The notes under the pieces are model-generated. The model had not been told where the DNA came from, searched no databases, and saw only the letters and a list, made by a program, of their open reading frames with translations. From Macrostomum hystrix (taxonomy: Eukaryota > Animalia > Platyhelminthes): a stretch of DNA of 64,000 nt. The translations under genes and the position numbers were made by a program. The stretch spans positions 868,001 to 932,000 of the forward strand of contig CATNEN010000039.1 in NCBI GenBank assembly GCA_950097015.1, written 5' to 3'. Below, one piece after another: positions 16,500 to 57,232 of the stretch (within the stretch, counting starts at the first letter, position 1; each line of letters opens with the position of its first letter).

Positions 16500-17249
16500 C
16501 CAAGGAAGGCATAGTTTTTTCTTCATGTTATTAATTTATTAATATACATTAAGTAGCCTTATTAATTTAAAAGAACATGTTCTCGGAACAAAGAACATGT
16601 TCGGAGTTGCCTATTAGGCGACCGTCGCGCATGTTCGATTACCGTTTCTTAGACCCTATCTCTGTCAACACGGGTGATCTTGTGATCTTTCTTTGTGATC
16701 ATAGGCTGGGGTAGGGAGACGTACTTTAAGGGTCTACTGCTCCGGCGCTGGATGCTGTAGGAAGCTGAAATTGCACGTGCTTCATCTACAGCCATGGCAA
16801 TTAATATTTTTCTTATATGTTACGACCCTTTGTTTTAACTTTTATTTTTTCCGGTACTGGTCTGATTACTACTGGGAAATAGGACGTACAAAACAGAACA
16901 CAAAAAATTGCCTATACTATCATAATAAACTAACTACTAGGAGTGTGAACACAAGTTTTGCCCAAATTTTTGTTATTGTAACTTTACTTATCATAATAAT
17001 AATTACATTCAATTTAGTAATACTAGTTTGTCTACTTCTCTTTTGTATGTTGGAAGCTTCAATGTAACACAAGGAAATTTTATACTTTATACTAGGCCTA
17101 ATTATAGTTGCCAACATGGTAACTAACAAAGTAACAACTAGGCTTTGGCTTGCTGCCTACTAGCTGGCAGTAACAGTTTACTGATTACCTTTCAGTATCA
17201 GTGTAGCTACTAAACTCTAGTCTAGGGGAATTTTTTGTTAATGCACTTA

Positions 17250-18529
17250 CGTCTATACTTCCAGTACCAGAACCAGTACCAGAACCAGTACCAGAAAAAA
17301 ATTATGTTATAGCCTTTACTTATATTCTGGGAGGGCTCTGAAATTTTACAGCCGTGTTCACAGATAATATTTCCTTCCAGATCTGAGTTTTCAGCGTCGT
17401 CTGACCACCAGATTCTGGGAGGTGACGAAAAGTACTTTTAAAATGGGAGATATCAGAGTGGGGGGGACTCGAGGGTCTACAACTCCGAGACGCGACTAGT
17501 CAGGGCTCTGAAATTTTACAGCCGTGTTCACAGATAATGTTTCCTTCCAGATCTGAGTTTTCAGCTTCTTTTGACCACCAGATTCAGTGAGGTGACGAAA
17601 AGTACTTTTAAAATGGGAGATATCAGAGTGGGGGGGACTCGAGGGTCTACAACTCCGAGACGCGACTAGTCAGGGCTCTGAAATTTTACAGCCGTGTTCA
17701 CAGATAATGTTTCCTTCCAGATCTGAGTTTTCAGCTTCTTTTGACCACCAGATTCAGTGAGGTGACGAAAAGTACTTTTAAAATGGGAGATATCAGAGTG
17801 GGGGGGACTCGAGGGTCTACAACTCCGAGACGCGACTAGTCAGGGCTCTGAAATTTTACAGCCGTGTTCACAGATAATGTTTCCTTCCAGATCTGAGTTT
17901 TCAGCTTCTTTTGACCACCAGATTCAGGGAGGTGACGAAAAGTACTTTTAAAGTGGGAGAAATCAGAGTGGGGGGGACTCGAGGGTCTACAACTCCGAGA
18001 CGCGACTAGTCAGGGCTCTGAAATTTTACAGCCGTGTTCACAGATAATGTTTCCTTCCTTATCTTTGCTCTCAGCTGTATATGATGTACGAGTAATAATC
18101 CTGCGAAGCGCAAAAGTGAGGTTATATTTTTAGTTTTTTTTTATGAAGTTTACGATGATTATAAAAATAATAAATTATACAAACACATTCAATGAGGTGA
18201 GTTTTGAGTTGTGATTTTAGTAGTTGCGATATTTAGTAAACCGCTTTTTGTATTCGTTTACTCAGTTGGTTGAGCAAATTTGTTTTATTCTATGAAAAAA
18301 ATATATTAGAAAACGTTTTGTGAAAGTAAACGATTTTTTTGTGTGTTGTGCGCAAGTCCGTCGATATTTATTAATTTTATTCTCAATAATGATATTTTCG
18401 GACCGATATATAAGTATTTCATCTGTTAGAAGTCTTTCTATTAGTTGCTTGTCGATTTTTTGTTGGCTGTAACATAATTTTTTTCTGGTACTGGTTCTGG
18501 TACTGGTTCTGGTACTGGAAGTATAGACG
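17250..18529. mobile_element. Non-autonomous TIR element (TA TSD, Tc1/mariner-like MITE) with an internal 170-bp tandem array
   Basis: ~65-bp TIRs at 17250-17314 and 18465-18529 containing CCAGTACCAGAA sub-repeats, flanked by TA. Array units start at 17333, 17503, 17673, 17843 and 18013. Confidence 0.88.
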
Positions 18530-19240
18530 TAATGCATGCACTTAATTTTCAGTATATGTATTTGCTCTAGGAGGCCTAAGTATATAGTAGTCCTATTGTT
18601 ATATGGCTTTTTTATATTATAAATTCAATTTTCATCAACTGCAATATGCTTATAATTAATAATCAATGTTTGTTATATTTAAAATTAAAATTAATTTTAA
18701 ATTGAAATTGACTGAATCTTAGTAGGGGCCTATAGGCCTATTACAAGCAACCAAGCAACCAAGATTTTCATTTTTAGTATGTAAGAAAACACTCATTCAT
18801 TATATATTTATTTAATTAGTGCCAGTGACAACTTACAATACAAGTGCCCTTGTGGTAAGACATTTTCAAATCTCAAACTTAGGCCTACTGAATCACTTGT
18901 TGTTTAGACAACCTTAATATATAGTCCTTTTAGGCTTCTATGAGTCATAGGTTTCCACAATCAAACATATGTATTTTTCAATATCCAATGCTGGCTTTAT
19001 ATCTATTAGGCCTATTCACTCAAACTCCCTTTATTTCTTTTGTCTAATATAATTCATAAATATTTTCTTATTTGGTCATTCCTAACAGCTGAACAGCTCA
19101 AATTATAGTATATAATATACTATATAGTTCATAGTATATTATAAATATTTTACAAGAAATATAACAATCTAGGCCTATAGGTCTTTGCACTGCCTAAGTG
19201 ACTACATTGCTAATGACAAATACTTGTTGCTTTAATATAG

Positions 19241-19969
19241 GGCAGAGCTTATTCCCACGGTCCTGTGCCGATAACTTCAATTTTATCCACACGGATCCAT
19301 GCCGATAATTTTCTGCTTATCCACACGGCAGCTTGTATGAATAGGTCTAAAACTCTTTATACAAATATGCCGTGCCATTAATTTCAATTTTATCTGCACG
19401 GTTCTGTTTTTTGAAATGAGGCCCTTTCGGGTTTGAATGTTTTGTTGAACCCTCAAGCCAATAGATTGACAAAGTTGCCAGTGCATTACAACTGTGTTCT
19501 ACATTTCGACCTACACATTCATTAACTGACATTAATGTCATCCTTTTTAATTATTTCAATAACAACTTACTAAATCTTTTGTCACTGTTACGTGTTTTCA
19601 TTCGAATTGTATTGACTTAAAAAGTAAGAAGTCTATCAAAGAAAATCATACGAGTCAACCAGCAGAATTCTAGTCAGCACCAAACTCATATATTATCACA
19701 CACATCACATACACATCACACACACATCACACACATCAAACACATATATTATCACACATCATTGTTATTATTTTACACTATGCATTGATAATGTACACTA
19801 TACACTATACTCTGAAGCAAAAGCCTTATGCTCAGAGAAGAATAGGTAGGGACTTGAAAGTAGACCTATTCATACAAGCTACCATGTGGATAAGCAGAAA
19901 ATTATTGGCATGGATCCATGTGGATAAAATTGAAATTATCGGCATGGGACCATGGGAATAAGCACTTCC
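19241..19969. mobile_element. Mutator-like (MULE) non-autonomous element
   Basis: 109-bp TIRs at 19241-19349 and 19861-19969. Perfect 9-bp TSD TTAATATAG at 19232-19240 and 19970-19978. Confidence 0.9.
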
Positions 19970-20988
19970 TTAATATAGAGACAATTAAGCTAATACTCAA
20001 ATTAAGCAATCAAATTAATCAAGTTAATCAAAAAGGTATATTAAAGAAAGTTAGCTATGTTGCAAAAAAAATTAAATGCTAACAAACTAATGTAGTGTTA
20101 ACATTCATAAAAATATAATTAAAAAAATGTCTATAAAAGAGCTTGATATATAGTTCCAGTTTTCTAACATATATATTGTTAAGTTACAAAAATACATAGG
20201 ACTAGTATCTTTGCTTGATGTAATACTTTTCAGATTTTTGCCTGTCCTAAGCTTGTCTGCTTAACATATACCTATAAAAAATGCACTTGTCTATGTATTA
20301 CTCAGAAATACTAGTTTGTAAATAGATACATCTATTAATTTTTAAGCAACAGATAAGACCTACATTTGGATCTCATTTTTGTTAGTTTTATTCCAGTAAA
20401 GTAGTTCTATTTACCTATTTGAGGCAGTAAAATACATGTATATAAGCAAAAGAAGTAAAATATACTATTATAAAAAATAACCTTTTTTGTAAAGGAACAG
20501 TGAAAATCTGTTGAGCTGCTTAGAAGAAGGTTGATTATAAACAACAAAATTCAAGGAAGCAAGATTTTATGTTTTAGTATTCATTCATTAGATTTAATTT
20601 TAATGCGTTCTTAATACTAGTAAAAATAGTTAAATTTGTAAAATGCACTGCAAAGCAAAGTGTTCAAAATATTTTTTTGGCCTGGTTATTTCATATTAAT
20701 AAAGCATTTAAGTGCATTTAAAGAGTGTTACACATACAAAAATTCTGATTTAAAACAAGGTGGAGCTTTGTCCATAATAGCACAGCTTTTTTATTTAATT
20801 CAGCAGTTTCTCATTTTTTGCTCCTTAAATCAAAATAGTATCATAACACCTTTTCTAAATACAAGTATTCTGTTCTAATATTCATTACTGCCATTAATGT
20901 CTTCAGAGAAATAATGTGAAGCTTGGTTAAGATCTCATTGCAAAGTAGCCAACTAGCCAAAGTGTAGGCATTCTGTTCTGGCCTAAAA

Positions 20989-49600: not shown

Positions 49601-52600
49601 TGACGCCGATCGCGCCTAGATTGGCGAGGTTCGGCATCAGCCAGCGGCCTATGGGCAGTTGCGAGTTGAGACAGTCGCCGCCGTCGAAGTCGCATTGGCT
49701 GGTGTTGCAGGGCAGATCGCAGGATCTGCGAAGTCGAGGAAGATTTGACGATTTTCTGCGTACAAAGGTCAGGCGTCCACGCGGCGAGTGCCAGCCCAGC
49801 ACAGATGCAATCCACATGAGAATTCACATAGACTCCAGGCGCAATTCACGTGTGAATTCACATAGACTCCAGGTGCAATCCACATGAGAATTCACATAGA
49901 CTCCAGGCGCAATCCACATGTGAATTCACATAGACTCCAGGCGCAATTCACATGTGAATTCACATAGACTCCAGGCGCAATTCACATGTGAATTCACATA
50001 GACTCCAGGCGCAATCCACATGTGAATTCACATAGACTCCAGGCGCAATTCACATGTGAATTCACATTGACTGCCCGCCTCACCCGTCGGCAATCCAGCT
50101 GTGCGGGCAGCCGACAGCGCAGTTTGGCACTTCCCAGCTCTGGAAGATTCGGTACCCCGCAGCCGGACTGTAGAAGTCATGTGGGTGCACCGGTCGCGTC
50201 AGGAAGACGTCATCGTTAAAGTACAGAAAGTGTTCAGACAGGCCGCGAATTCTGTGCAGATGGCTCTCGATGGCCGGCGCATTGAAGGTGGGCAGGTGCG
50301 ACTTGTTTGGGAAAATTTCCTGTGAATTGTTTGAAAGTGAAGATGTGATTGTTTCGCACCAACATCATAACTGTTATTGGCTGCACCATCTCCAACCTGG
50401 CTCTCGCTCGTTCACCCCACCCCTCCTCAACCCTCACCGCCCAGCTCATTAGCCTAGGCTCTGCCATCTATTTGCTCATCTGAAATTTGGGAAAACTAAG
50501 CTTCGCTTCGATTGGACCTTCGCTGGTGGTCAAGGCCGATCTGCTTCACTCACCTGGTGCGTGACCACAGAGAGGCGCGGATTGGACAGGTTGAGCCAGG
50601 TAGGCACCTGGCCGTTGGTCACCAGGTAGATGCGACGCAGCCATGGCGCGAATTGACTCACCGATCGCAGCGAGTACCTCAGCTCCTATAATTGAAACAG
50701 GTGCCTCTGCTGCCTTTATCTGCTCGCCTGTTCGACCACTGGCAGAATGTCTCAGCCCTGCCCCAGAGACTCACGTCATTGTCCTCAAAGCGACTTCGCT
50801 CCCTGCCGGTGTTCGCGGAGCCGAAGGACAGAAGCACGGAGGTGTGGCTGGCCAGCAGCTCGCGGCTTCTGGACAGCTTCAACTGGGAGAATATTACATA
50901 CTAGTAGTCGAGCTATAAACCACCCAGCCAAAACACCCAAAAACCAGCAGCCAATCATAAACACCCCAGAAACCAGCAGCCAATCATAAACACCCCAGAA
51001 ACCAGCAGCCAATCATAAACACCCCAGAAACCAGCAGCCAATCATAGACACCCCAGAAACCAGCAGCCAATCATAGACACCCCAGAAACCAGCAGCCAAT
51101 CATAGACACCCCAGAAACCAGCAGCCAATCATAGACACCCCAGAAACCAGCAGCCAATCATAGACACCCCAGAAACCAGCAGCCAATCATAGACACCCCA
51201 GCAACCAGCAGCCAATCAAAGACACCCCAGCAACAAGTTAGCAACTGCAGCAGGCCTCACTGTCGCGGCCTCTAGGGCGAGCTCCTTGTCCCGGACTGAG
51301 GCGAAATGCGCCACGGCCAGCCGCCGTCTCGGCCTGTGCAGCCGCAGCTCGAGCCGTCGCAGCCGTCCGCCGAAGCCGCTGAGAAGACGCCGCAGGCGGC
51401 CCTCGCGCACCGAGGCGGTAACTTCGAGAGCAGCGGCGAGCGGCAGCTCGAATACCGGGATGGCAGTCGGATTAGCGAATGCCTGAGGATTTTGGAATAT
51501 TTTGGGACGGCAGTCGAGAATTCGAGCTTTGACGGAATTGCTACTCACACGTCAGTGACACCTATGTTAGCGTCATTATAAATGTAGCTAACTTAGTTCG
51601 ACCCCCCTAACAACCCCGCAATTCTACTCCACTCGACTCCAATCCGCTACAATTCTACTCCACTCGACTCCAATCCGCTACAATTCTACTCCACTCGACT
51701 CCAATTCTACCCCAGTCTGCTCCTATCCTACCCCACTCTGCTCCAATTCTACCCCACTCTGCTCCAATTCTACCCCACTCTGCTCCAATTCTACCCCACT
51801 CTGCTCCAATTCTACCCCAGTCTGCTCCATTCAATACCAAATATCCTATGCTGAGAAGTGAGCAGTCTATTGAGCAATTAGGAGCAAAACAAGAAGCGCA
51901 GGACTCAATCGGATTCACAAATTTTATTTGCTAAATCTCTTAAGTCGAGAAGAACAGGTGCCTCTGATTTGTTTTCTGACACTGAAGAGCCAGGTTTAAA
52001 CTGGTTTTGAATAGCACAGGATTGCTGACTGACACACAATGTGCCAGAAACCAGCAGCCAATCATAGACACCCCAGAAACCAGCAGTTTGAGCACCTTGA
52101 ACAGGTGACTTAAAGGTTTAAAGTCTGCTGAGAGAAGTGCTTCAATAATCCGTTTTCACTGAGACTAAGGGCACCAGTTGATCCAGGCCTTCGAGTATCA
52201 GCCGCGCTCAAAGAATTCCCCGTCCAATGTGCCGTTCAGGGCAGTCGGTGCCAGCGCAAACTCCAGCAGGTGGCACCGACCCATCTGCAGGCTGAATACG
52301 AATGCCTGGCAAGCCGAGCCGCACAGGTGAGCACACTCGGTCAGACCACGGCCAGTCACAGTTCTGAAGGCCAAGGCGCTCGGCTTGCCAACATCCGCCA
52401 GGCTCCGGTTGCCGACTACAAAGAAGTTCTCGGCTGAAATGGCCCATTTTCAGCTCTAAAAGCAGTTCTCATGGTCGGCGGGTGCTTTTGTGATAGTTTG
52501 AGCAAAGCTTGAGCACAACCCCAGCTCAGCCACCCGAATGAAGCCTCACTGTGGAAGTAGTTCAGCTTGAGCACAACCCCAGCTCAGCCACCCGAATGAA

Positions 52601-55600
52601 GCCTCACTGTGGAAGTAGTTCAGCTTGAGCACAACCCCAGCTCAGCCACCCGAATGAAGCCTCACTGTGGAAGTAGTTCAGCTTGAGCACAACCTTCAGC
52701 TCAGCCACCCGAATGAAGCCTCACTGTGGAAGTAGTTCAGCTTGAGCACAACCCCAGCTCAGCCACCCGAATGAAGCCTCACTGTGGAAGTAGTTCAGCT
52801 TGAGCACAACCCCAGCTCAGCCACCCGAATGAAGCCTCACTGTGGAAGTAGTTCAGCTTGAGCACAACCCCAGCTCAGCCACCCGAATGAAGCCTCACTG
52901 TGGAAGTAGTTCAGCTTGAGCACAACCCCAGCTCAGCCACCCGAATGAAGCCTCACTGTGGAAGTAGTTCAGCTTGAGCACAACCCCAGCTCAGCCACCC
53001 GAATGAAGCCTCACTGTGGAAGTAGTTCAGCTTGAGCACAAAATTCCGGAAGCTGCCGCCGCAGTTTTCAGTGCTGTCGCCCTTGCAGGCGAGGCTGCAG
53101 TCATTGGCCGCCGCGACCCCCAGCGCGCCGTAGGCGTTGCCGCAGCTGCACCACTGCGAGGCCTGCAGAGCGGCGAACTGGAAGCCTCCCAGAGCGCAGA
53201 CATTGGCGCACAGTCGGTGCGTCATCTGGTCGCGGTACACGAAGACGTCGTTGTTGTTCTGATTCAGGGAACGGCTGCCCAGCCGGCGCAAGCCGAAGTC
53301 CTTCAGGCCGGAGAACTCTCGCTGACCGTTGGTGCCATCGATGAAGCAGCCCAGACTGGTGAGTTGGAGCTGTCTGGCCCGGGCTGCGGGGAGCACGCAG
53401 GCCAGCAGCAGGACAGCTGAGGCGCCGCAAGCCATCAGTGGCAGCGAATCGAAATCATCGGCCGCAGTTGCTGGGCTGTCTTTTATGCGCTTATTTTGTT
53501 TGTTGCTGCGTTTCGAAGGCTCAGGTTGAGATTGAGCAGATTTCTTACCCGTTATCCAGCTGAAAATAGCAATCATGCGAAGGCACCGCAGGGCTATTGT
53601 GTGGCTGGCACATTGTATGTCAGTAAGCAATCCTGTGCTATTCAAAACCAGTTTAAACCTGGCTCTTCAGTGCAGAAAACAAAGGACCAGTTTGACAATC
53701 GCTGAAATGCAATTTCCTTGAGCTATTATTTTTAATCCCAGCCTTTCAACACTGCCTTTCGGCTGGAGAAACGAGTCGTTTTATAGTCTTTCATATTCTG
53801 GACACGGATGGTGTGTCTGGTATAAGCCTCTTGTTCAATAATCTGCCGTTCTGAGCTGCTGTTAGCCCACCGATATCTGCGAAAACCCAAAAATAGCAGA
53901 ATTTGATGAATGCAAAACGGTGCAAAACGGTGACGAACTCCTGAAATCATCGTTCTATGTGATCTTGAGTGTCGTAGTTGCGAAGCCAGTCACAACACCG
54001 ACTTGCGAAGAAATATATGCAAATCCAATACACTTCGTAATTTTGACAAGTGTTGAACTTGAGATGTGGCACCGAAAGTAAAAACATACTATTAGGACTC
54101 ACACAGAACAGTCGGGACTCACACAGAACAGTCGGGACTCACATAGAACAGTCGGGACTCACACAGAACAGTCGGGACTCACATAGAACAGTCGGGACTC
54201 ACACAGAACAGTCGGGACTCACATAGAACAGTCGGGACTCACACAGAACAGTCGGGACTCACATAGAACAGTCGGGACTCACACAGAACAGTCGGGACTC
54301 ACACAGAACAGTCGGGACTCACACAGAACAGTCGGGACTCACACAGAACAGTCGGGACTCACACAGAACAGTCGGGACTCACATAGAACAGTCGGGACTC
54401 ACACAGAACAGTCGGGACTCACATAGAAAAGCGGCTCGCCCCAACTGTCGGTCTCCTTCTGTCTTAGTCGCGGTCGAGCTCCACCAAAGCCACACCGCTT
54501 GCAGCCGGCGGTCACTTTGAACTCGTCCGCTGACGCTGCCGTTGACGTTGCTGGCGTTGACATGATGTCAGCACTGACGCTGGTGTTGGAGATAGATGGA
54601 CTGGACTCAGCAGAGTCCACAAACACGTAGGGAGACGGGAAGCAGGGGTTGTCATCAGAGCACACGGAGTTGCTTCTGAAATTGGCAGGTTCACGTTTGA
54701 AATAAATCCAAAGAAAAAAACGGAATTCTGTGAATTCCCAGACTTTTCTGCAAGACATTCAGAAGCAGCTGACAATGAAGTGCATTCGATGTCAGGGGAA
54801 AGGCGCTCTCAAACTCACTCTCTGCGATGGTAGAGCTCCAGCTGCGTCAGGAAGGCAGGGTCGCTACCGTTCACCCAGGTGTAGACAGCGTCGATAGGCC
54901 AGGGCCCGGTCAGGCTAAAGTACGGCAAGAGCACAATCGGGATAGAATGAACTGGACACATGACAGGCTCGGGTCACAAGAGGACAATCGGAATAAATGA
55001 ACTGGACACATGACAGGCTCGGGTCACAAGAGTACAATCGGAATAGAATGAACTGGACACATGACAGGCTCGGGTCACAAGAGTACAATCGGAATAGAAT
55101 GAACTGGACACATGACAGGCTCAGGTCACAAGAGTACAATCAGAATAGAATGAACTGGACACATGACAGGCTCGGGTCACAAGAGCACAATCGGAATAGA
55201 ATGAACTGGACACATGACAGGCTCGGGTCACAAGAGCACAATCGGAATAGAATGAACTGGACACATGACAGGCTCGGGTCACAAGAGCACAATCGGAATA
55301 GAATGAACTGGACACATGACAGGCTCGGGTCACAAGAGCACAATCGGAATAGAATGAACTGGACACATGACAGGCTCGGGTCACAAGAGCACAATCGGAA
55401 TAGAATGAACTGGACACATGACAGGCTCGGGTCACAAGAGGACAATCGGAATAGAATGAACTGGACACATGACAGGCTCGGGTCACAAGATTACAATCGG
55501 AATAGAATGAACTGGACACATGACAGGCTCGGGTCACAAGAGGACAATCGGAATAGAATGAACTGGACACATGACAGGCTCGGGTCACAAGAGCACAATC

Positions 55601-57232
55601 GGAATAGAATGAATTGGACACATGACAGGCTCGGGTCACAAGATTACAATCGGAATAGAATGAACTGGACACATGACAGGCTCGGGTCACAAGAGGACAA
55701 TCGGAATAGAATGAACTGGACACATGACAGGCTCGGGTCACAAGAGGACAATCGGAATAGAATGAACTGGACACATGACAGGCTCGGGTCACAAGATTAC
55801 AATCGGAATAGAATGAATTGGACACATGACAGGCTCGGGTCACAAGAGTACAATCGGAATAGAATGAACTGGACACATGACAGGCTCGGGTCACAAGAGG
55901 ACAATCGGAATAGAATGAATTGGACACATGACAGGCTCGGGTCACAAGATTACAATCGGAATAGAATGAATTGGACACATGACAGGCTCGGGTCACAAGA
56001 GGACAATCGGAATAGAATGAACTGGACACATGACAGGCTCGGGTCACAAGAGGACAATCGGAATAGAATGATCTGGACACATGACAGGCTCGGGTCACAA
56101 GAGTACAATCGGAATAGAATGAATTGGACACATGACAGGCTCGGGTCACAAGAGTACAATCGGAATAGAATGAACTGGACACATGACAGGCTCGGGTCAC
56201 AAGAGTACAATCGGAATAGAATGAACTGGACACATGACAGGCTCGGGTCACAAGAGGACAATCGGGTTAGAATGAACTGGACACATGACAGGCTCGGGTC
56301 ACAAGATTACAATCGGAATAGAATGAATTGGACACATGACAGGCTCGGGTCACAAGATTACAATCGGAATAGAATGAACTGGACACATGACAGGCTCGGT
56401 CACAGTGAGGCCGTCACAACTTCCTAACGTAGCTTTCGCCCCCATGAAGGTTGAAACTAGCAAAAGCTGGCATTGAATCAAGCGAATCGCGCTAACTCAC
56501 TCCAGATTAGACGATGACAAGCGGAACGACTTTAAGCATTCTTTATCATCCTGAGGTACATTTACGCGGTCTCGCAATGGCAGCAGCAGCCTCTGAAAAA
56601 GTATGAAAATATATTCGTAAGAGGTGCAGCTTCATGAACCTTATTTGTTGTACTTTATTTTTTAAATATAAAAATCTGCACCTTTTAAAGCGTTAAAGCG
56701 TTATTAAAAAAATAATGATAATAATATTAATAATGTGCCTAAAAGCCTTCCATCGCTTTAACATATAAGCTCTCATTGATTGAGCTTATTGGTTTAACAG
56801 CTAGCCGATATGTATCGAAATACTATCAACCAATGGCAAATAGACACACATGTAGGTCCACAGCACTTCTTCTATGGCTGAATTGAAACCTAAATTGGGA
56901 GGATAGAAATTGCGTCCAAGCCTGTTGGGCCACTGGCACAGCCACAGCTACTAAGCTGTGTGACTAGTACGCAGTGCTTGCCACACCCACACTAGCTAAT
57001 GCCAGAATCTAGAATCTGCATGCTATCCTACTCTGCAGCCTGCAGCTTGTTCAGTGGCTTGAACTGGGAGACTGAGGGGCAGCGGGCACCACACAAGGCA
57101 ACTTGCAGTCAGCCTCACTTCGATAGCCACAACGGTCAGCAGGCAGACGCACACAGCGGCCAGGCAGCCAGACCTGCGGCCCGACCTGCAGTTGAGCAGG
57201 TCCAAGAGCCGGCGCTGCACCAGCTTTCGCAT
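43672..57232 (-). CDS. GNPTAB: GlcNAc-1-phosphotransferase alpha/beta precursor (Stealth family), multi-exon
   Basis: Exon 1 57232-57119 (MRKLVQRR plus TM), then 56592-56501. CR1 [13 protein letters not shown] at ~54870. CR2 RFEDND|[32 protein letters not shown] at 50.1-50.8 kb. LNR repeats at 49.5-49.8 kb. CR3 PAHMPH and [11 protein letters not shown] at 46.5-47.2 kb. CR4 [16 protein letters not shown] at 44.2-44.3 kb. C-terminal TM, stop at 43672. Some internal exon edges are approximate. Confidence 0.93.
44350..45605 (+). repeat. 22-bp minisatellite (GNPTAB intron)
   Basis: TATGCAATCCATGCAACAATCC repeats. Confidence 0.97.
45860..46097 (+). repeat. (GAGT)n microsatellite (GNPTAB intron)
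   Basis: Direct inspection. Confidence 0.97.
46625..47030 (+). repeat. 51-bp repeat decaying into CCTACCC/CATG-rich repeats (GNPTAB intron)
   Basis: TACCCCATGTACATAGCCCACACAGTGCCTACCCTTTGCC.. about 4 copies. Confidence 0.9.
47545..48522 (+). repeat. ~16-bp minisatellite with a higher-order duplication (GNPTAB intron)
   Basis: ACTCAGACACCTGGAT repeats. The interrupting block GGTTAATAGGTTCATGGTTCAGACG occurs twice (~47762 and ~48023). Confidence 0.95.
49806..50068 (+). repeat. 34-bp minisatellite (GNPTAB intron)
   Basis: GAATTCACATAGACTCCAGGCGCAATTCACATGT repeats. Confidence 0.95.
50930..51235 (+). repeat. 29-bp minisatellite (GNPTAB intron)
   Basis: GAAACCAGCAGCCAATCATAGACACCCCA repeats. 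Confidence 0.95.
51620..51830 (+). repeat. 21-bp and related repeats (GNPTAB intron)
   Basis: CCAATTCTACCCCACTCTGCT repeats. Confidence 0.9.
52198..53435 (-). CDS. Secreted WSC + PAN/apple domain protein (~218 aa) nested in a GNPTAB intron; exons 53435-53015 and 52433-52198
   Basis: Signal peptide [23 protein letters not shown] domain [34 protein letters not shown]. Phase-1 intron. Exon 2 reads ..[30 protein letters not shown]. Confidence 0.85.
52507..53041 (-). repeat. 58-bp tandem repeat (~9 copies) derived from the exon/intron junction
   Basis: Each unit is the last ~26 nt of exon 1 plus the GTGAGG donor and the intron start. Confidence 0.97.
54095..54428 (-). repeat. 20-bp tandem repeat containing the splice donor (TTCTRT|GTGAGTCCCGAC)
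   Basis: The first unit on the - strand overlaps the GNPTAB exon end at 54423. Confidence 0.97.
54926..56403 (+). repeat. 51-bp minisatellite, ~29 copies (GNPTAB intron 2)
   Basis: ACAATCGGAATAGAATGAACTGGACACATGACAGGCTCGGGTCACAAGAG.. repeats. Confidence 0.98.

Follow-up and report, generated by a model that had tools for sequence, protein, structure and literature searches.

A WSC-PAN gene nested on the same strand in a GNPTAB-type intron of Macrostomum hystrix, and the unique inverted repeat that brackets it, a possible product of local templated insertion

Overview of the locus

The locus described here lies in a 64,000 nt stretch of the Macrostomum hystrix genome (assembly GCA_950097015.1, contig CATNEN010000039.1, positions 868,001 to 932,000; 'the window' below, in whose coordinates all positions are given), where a single intron (54422–51483) of a gene of the Stealth/GNPTAB type, the host, wholly contains a second gene (53435–52198), the guest, on the same strand. 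The guest is bracketed by two inverted copies of an 80 nt sequence, the arms, which match only each other in the genome. The host, the guest and all other genes discussed at this locus are on the minus strand. We lean, if only slightly, towards reading the locus as an ordinary same-strand nested gene beside which a young local inverted duplication was formed by a templated, template-switch insertion. The downstream arm would then be a derived copy of the upstream one, and the inverted repeat a young mutational by-product.

The inverted arms and the composite patch

The upstream arm (53605–53683, minus strand) ends 169 nt before the guest ATG, and the downstream arm (51968–52047, minus strand) starts 150 nt past the guest stop codon, where it probably forms part of the guest 3′ untranslated region (UTR). 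The two align over 80 nt with 77 of 80 positions identical (96.25 %), the departures being two substitutions inside the alignment and one 1 nt indel, and the ends are frayed. The initial annotation of this sequence had described near-perfect arms bracketing the guest at these positions with no target-site duplication evident, and both parts of that description stand: at the outer arm ends the flanks, CTCTGA| and |GGACCA, share no bases.

The match between the arms is far beyond chance, and the whole window holds just three inverted pairs of such quality, the other two being the ends of multi-copy transposons. Searches of the genome (220,453,370 bp in 42 contigs) with an arm and with the whole host intron found no match to either arm except the other; the unique parts of the intron have no other genome copy, and relatives were found only for its minisatellites and for the WSC-PAN exons of the guest. 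Since the genome search skips very common words, a control was run with the two other inverted pairs of the window (17247/18465 and 19238/19861), and these gave at least 40 and at least 60 genome matches, respectively, in the same search. Real terminal-repeat families are thus visible to it. No inverted repeat of 35 nt or longer is present at any of the 11 guest-paralog loci examined. There are no Rfam matches in the segment 50000–56000, and neither arm folds singly better than its own shuffles; identification of the arms as a microRNA-like or other small structured RNA was considered and rejected. An assembly artefact is also unlikely: RNA-derived sequence agrees with guest exon 1 at every position, and unique sequence fills the 1.6 kb between the arms, which sets them apart from a foldback chimera.

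A clue to how the arms arose is found at the inner end of the downstream arm. Here the arm is joined to a 43 nt minisatellite piece (52044–52086) that is identical at 43/43 positions to 1.5 units, with five array units matched, of a 29 bp minisatellite (10.3 copies, 50936–51234) in the next host intron, the putative template of the piece. Arm and piece overlap by 4 nt (CCAG) and sit in a 135 nt patch (51964–52098) flanked by a 12 nt direct repeat, with GAACAGGTGCCT at 51952–51963 and its partner GAACAGGTGACT at 52099–52110 (consensus GAACAGGTG[C/A]CT); as high a repeat score was reached by 15 of 500 shuffles. The patch therefore sets two sources side by side, an inverted 80 nt copy from 1.6 kb off and a direct 43 nt copy from about 0.9 kb off. 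Microhomology is seen as CCAG where the arm meets the minisatellite piece and as the 12 nt repeat at the patch borders, and there is none at the other junctions; a 14-mer beside the downstream arm has an exact local match at 50696–50709 that is marginal (E 0.035). An inverted copy and a direct copy fused by microhomology, with a direct repeat at the site, form the pattern described for template switching of the MMBIR type (break-induced replication mediated by microhomology).

Under this scheme, a polymerase that switched templates, either in replication or while a break was being repaired, would have copied the upstream arm, in inverted orientation, to a position 1.6 kb away. The 4 nt of microhomology would have linked this inverted copy to 1.5 units copied directly from the minisatellite of the next intron. 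The resulting 135 nt patch would have landed, flanked by the 12 nt direct repeat, in the probable 3′ UTR of the guest. A region full of slippage-prone minisatellites may have provided the setting for such switching, and the stem that the arms can form would by default be a tolerated by-product. Both introns neighbouring the guest-bearing one are rich in minisatellites as well, and surroundings of this kind fit a template-switch origin of the patch.

Templated insertions, often inverted, that derive from nearby templates and carry microhomology at their junctions are a known class (PMC8421209, PMC11724301), and the patch resembles them in its inverted nearby copy, its second local template fused by microhomology and its short direct repeat. 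It differs in being germline and fixed. Several further points weigh against the templated-insertion reading. No ancestral empty site or pre-insertion allele was seen, so both the direction of copying and the origin in a single event are deduced from the present sequence. The insertions of PMC8421209 are inverted copies from at most 100 bp away (a limit set by the search tool), whereas the template here is 1.6 kb off, and those of PMC11724301 are mostly ~5–34 bp long, as against 80 nt here. The 12 nt direct repeat is of modest significance only. The substitutions and indel between the arms point either to some age or to error-prone copying, and a present function for the stem would be compatible with a by-product origin.

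The nested gene

Exon 1 of the guest (53015–53435) begins with an ATG at 53435, encodes a predicted signal peptide (..LPAARA|RQLQ..) followed by a WSC domain (55.6 bits in Pfam, where the cut-off is 27.8; E 6.5e-15), and ends in phase 1 at CACA|GTGAGG. It is followed by an intron of 581 nt (52434–53014) that consists mostly of a 58 bp minisatellite (9.2 copies, 52506–53041, minus strand), the unit of which includes the last 36 nt of exon 1 together with the GTGAGG donor; since 58 is not a multiple of 3, only the first of the nine tandem donors keeps the reading frame. Exon 2 (52198–52433) is PAN/apple-like, with four conserved cysteines and the family C-terminus ..FFERG, and its TGA stop codon has its last base at 52198. 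Searches were made with each exon singly. Exon 2 has a weak PAN_1 match (E 0.034) that falls under the cut-off; the same profile matches 11 of 12 members of the WSC-PAN family, weakly but consistently (best E 0.0033), and the top PDB matches for the PAN-like exon are to the HGF N domain (E 0.34). With the clear WSC match, the weaker PAN-like exon and flanking Stealth exons on the minus strand, the initial annotation of a complete same-strand gene within a GNPTAB intron is borne out. Its end for exon 1, however, at ..FRNF (53040) in phase 0, is wrong, because the only usable acceptor, TTTCAG|CC (52435–52434), needs phase 1; the true end is 25 nt further on, at 53015. A donor at the same place and in the same phase (N|GTGAG or N|GTAAG) is found in all 11 paralogs examined, and in these and the guest alike the phase-1 intron follows the motif V-x-x-L-x-Y-x-x at the end of exon 1.

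The WSC-PAN family has at least 150 matches in the genome, mostly in tandem clusters. The closest paralogs of the guest among these matches, on contig C15, are just 57 % identical in protein and 66–67 % in DNA sequence, and for this reason we regard the guest, as far as its sequence can tell, as an old, solitary and intact family member. The family itself appears to be a Macrostomum-specific one of secreted proteins, and the guest follows its layout, with a signal peptide and a WSC exon, then a phase-1 intron and a PAN-like exon, and the C-terminus ..FF(V/E)RG; unlike most of the family, it is solitary, diverged (at most 57 % identical) and nested in GNPTAB, outside any tandem cluster. A protein homologue search with exon 1, limited by its length window and word index, gave no matches.

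A TATA-like box, CATAAAAG, is located at 53480–53487 on the minus strand, 44 nt upstream of the guest ATG, and is a candidate promoter element. Paralogs have comparable boxes 44–120 nt ahead of their ATGs: CATAAAAG or CATAAAGG in those on contig C15, and the TATATAA type in others. A promoter belonging to the guest itself thus seems to lie between the upstream arm and the ATG, and the position of the box implies that the guest mRNA probably lacks the upstream arm. At the other end, the sole canonical AATAAA within 400 nt past the guest stop (51923–51928, minus strand; +269) is a candidate poly(A) signal that lies 39 nt beyond the downstream arm and hence outside the stem. In many paralogs the corresponding 400 nt contain no AATAAA, so comparison with them is uninformative on this point. 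We note that the guest reading frame is open upstream through the upstream arm, from stop to stop over 52956–53666. A strong acceptor-like site, TTGCTATTTTCAG|, is also present at 53561–53560 on the minus strand and may be a spliced-leader acceptor or a cryptic cis acceptor. If the host spliced into this site, the reading frame would meet a stop after four codons.

The host gene

The host encodes, in successive exons, Stealth CR1 (E 2.3e-12), CR2 (3e-20), two LNR/Notch repeats (1.7e-10) and CR4 (2.5e-13), all above their Pfam cut-offs, together with a weak match to Stealth CR3 (E 0.045). The order of CR1, CR2, LNR and CR4 over these exons identifies it, at the level of sequence, as an N-acetylglucosamine-1-phosphotransferase gene of the GNPTAB type, and it is single-copy in a genome-wide search. 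The guest-bearing intron is located between the CR1 region upstream and the CR2, LNR and CR4 regions downstream. The CR1 exon (54819–54914) has a phase-2 end at GA|GTGAGT and a putative acceptor at 54916–54915. The frame carries on from it (GA+A) into the next exon (54423–54675), which is also single-copy in the genome and ends ..GEPLFY|GTGAGT. The intron that follows (51483–54422) is 2,940 nt long and, as read from the sequence, is a GT-AG intron in phase 0 running from TAT|GTGAGT to CCTCAG|GCA, in agreement with the junction EPLFY|AFANP annotated initially. The exon beyond it (51264–51482, AFANP..EAAT) is in phase 0 at both ends.

The nearest outside proteins to the host are Stealth_CR2 proteins of Macrostomum lignano, 87 % identical over one conserved exon. 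Two of these, P0002 and P0151, begin within the homologue of the exon at 51264–51482, and P0151 joins that exon to the CR2 exon; this homology indicates that the host intron and its phase had been called correctly. A protein homologue search with the 51264–51482 exon, subject to the same length-window and word-index limits as that with guest exon 1, gave no matches. The exon ahead of the CR2 exon differs among the M. lignano fragments, P0003 having another exon (corresponding to 50780–50880 of the window) where P0151 and P0002 have the AFANP type (51264–51482), and P0002 skips the first CR2 exon. These differences suggest that Macrostomum GNPTAB is alternatively spliced or that its gene models are faulty.

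The guest-bearing intron starts with a 20 bp minisatellite (16.7 copies, 54095–54428, minus strand), the unit of which consists of the last 3 nt of the host exon plus the GTGAGTCCCGACTGTTC donor. About 17 consensus 5′ splice sites are consequently stacked at the start of the intron, and splicing from a later one in place of the first would shift the frame by 20 nt.

RNA evidence

The RNA evidence consists of Logan contigs from one run, X1, which holds 5 % of the sampled words; coverage is thin and two contigs were placed. One is spliced and joins host position 50553 to 50318, downstream of the guest, the joined sequence being found once in the window. The other lies on guest exon 1 (53246–53431, 186 nt) and is 100 % identical to it. 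These two contigs show host transcription reaching beyond the guest, and they place guest exon 1 in RNA; the guest is probably expressed. The rest of the 2.9 kb host intron is uncovered at this thin coverage.

Alternative origins and possible functions of the inverted repeat

Inversions made by staggered breaks in Drosophila leave inverted duplications that bound the inverted segment, and among nested genes the antisense orientation is the commoner one. The arms could accordingly be the scar of a micro-inversion, in which staggered breaks flipped a segment of 1.56 kb, duplicated one breakpoint in inverted orientation and turned the guest from antisense to sense. The inverted duplication does bound a segment exactly, and the commoner antisense orientation would be the starting state. 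We nevertheless consider this origin rather unlikely, since it leaves unexplained both the 43 nt minisatellite copy fused to the arm and the 12 nt repeat around the patch, and since the sole canonical AATAAA of the guest would fall outside the flipped segment.

Whatever their origin, the arms could pair in RNA. The duplex that they would form in sense RNA has a predicted energy of −143 kcal/mol. When the whole intron of 2,940 nt is folded, its minimum-energy structure has 75 of the 79 bases of the upstream arm paired to the downstream one. Host pre-mRNA, which would carry both arms, could therefore close an 80 bp stem around the promoter, exons and splice sites of the guest, whereas the guest mRNA would keep only the downstream arm. 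The initial annotation had proposed that such a stem insulates the two genes: the arms would pair in host pre-mRNA and loop out the guest, while the guest transcript lacks the upstream arm. With the guest splice sites looped out, the host 5′ splice site would be steered to the host acceptor, and the guest mRNA, starting downstream of the upstream arm, would stay open. The structural premises of this proposal hold, in that the stem is predicted within the intron fold and the TATA-like box lies inside the loop, which leaves the guest mRNA probably free of the upstream arm. The loop closed by the arms also holds the acceptor-like site at 53561–53560, the nine tandem donors and the guest acceptor, and host mRNA downstream of the guest is present and spliced. 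Against the proposal, the arms are much younger than the guest, and the host must therefore have managed before they arose; moreover, the stem does not enclose the sole canonical poly(A) signal. The two arm substitutions, which in sense RNA give one U-G wobble and one U-C mismatch, are uninformative on this question. We judge an insulating role to be unlikely.

Inverted Alu pairs drive the formation of circular RNAs, and long-range 'RNA bridges' act in splicing. The arms resemble these exon-looping sequences as two complementary intronic stretches that flank splice sites and could form a long stem; they differ in that the unit looped out would be a whole gene with its promoter, and in that the stem is predicted from sequence. 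The stem might accordingly drive some other RNA outcome. One would be a circular RNA, in which guest exon 1 is back-spliced between its donor (53014) and the acceptor-like site (53560), and the complementary arms do flank an acceptor-exon-donor unit of the appropriate geometry. Another would be small RNAs: Dicer would cut the hairpin of the host pre-mRNA, and the products would target the arm in the guest 3′ UTR, where the downstream arm probably lies, so that guest output is coupled negatively to host transcription. ADAR/ADAT-type deaminase loci are present in the genome, which makes enzymes that process double-stranded RNA plausible. Both versions are deduced from geometry, and we hold outcomes of this kind to be very improbable. 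Taken by itself, the claim that the 80 bp stem is at present a working device, either sequestering the guest splice sites in host pre-mRNA or being diced into small RNAs that tune the guest down, seems to us decidedly doubtful.

The remaining possibility, that a cut-and-paste transposon (of the Pack type, as the initial annotation put forward, or another) brought the gene in with the arms as its terminal inverted repeats, recommends itself by the complete gene bracketed by two inverted arms but is barely credible, given that the arms are unique in 220 Mb in a search that found the control families, lack a target duplication at their outer ends, occur at none of the 11 paralog loci, are at 96 % identity far younger than the guest, and enclose unique intron sequence not repeated elsewhere, the inner end of one of them being fused to a local minisatellite piece. 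The likeness to Pack-type Mutator-like elements (Pack-MULEs) and Pack-TIR transposons stops at inverted arms around host-derived coding sequence, for here there is no repeat family or second copy, and the arms enclose an old complete gene instead of a fragment captured recently. With the host gene being single-copy, no empty paralogous site exists.

Other repeats of the window

The two other inverted pairs of the window belong to short elements in an AT-rich stretch. One has 68 nt inverted repeats that are 99 % identical (17247–17314 and 18465–18532), with arms present in at least 40 copies genome-wide; the other has 112 nt inverted repeats that are 90 % identical (19238–19349 and 19861–19972), with arms in at least 60 copies (579 first-look candidates). 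The two elements, at 17247–18532 and 19238–19972, probably represent families of DNA transposons resembling miniature inverted-repeat transposable elements. Directly upstream of the acceptor of the CR1 exon is a 51 bp minisatellite of 29 copies (54926–56404, 1.5 kb), which is open in several frames and gives rise to spurious open reading frames of 476 and 376 amino acids.

Same-strand nesting and the use of the locus

Pairs of host and nested genes on the same strand in animal introns have been surveyed (PMC11694760), and effects of interference between such genes are described (PMC3192792). The guest conforms to these pairs as a complete gene in one intron, on the same strand and with an apparent promoter of its own, whose splice and poly(A) signals could interfere with the host; it departs from them in being bracketed by a unique 80 nt inverted duplication. 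Were the stem of that duplication to have a function, it would offer a natural solution to how a host tolerates a same-strand guest that has its own splice and poly(A) signals, and Macrostomum has the transgenesis tools with which the stem could be tested. On present evidence the greater value of the locus is as a clear germline case of a long inverted repeat within a gene, probably made by a composite templated insertion. It is also one more case of a minisatellite-rich flatworm genome tolerating same-strand nested genes and stacked, duplicated splice donors.

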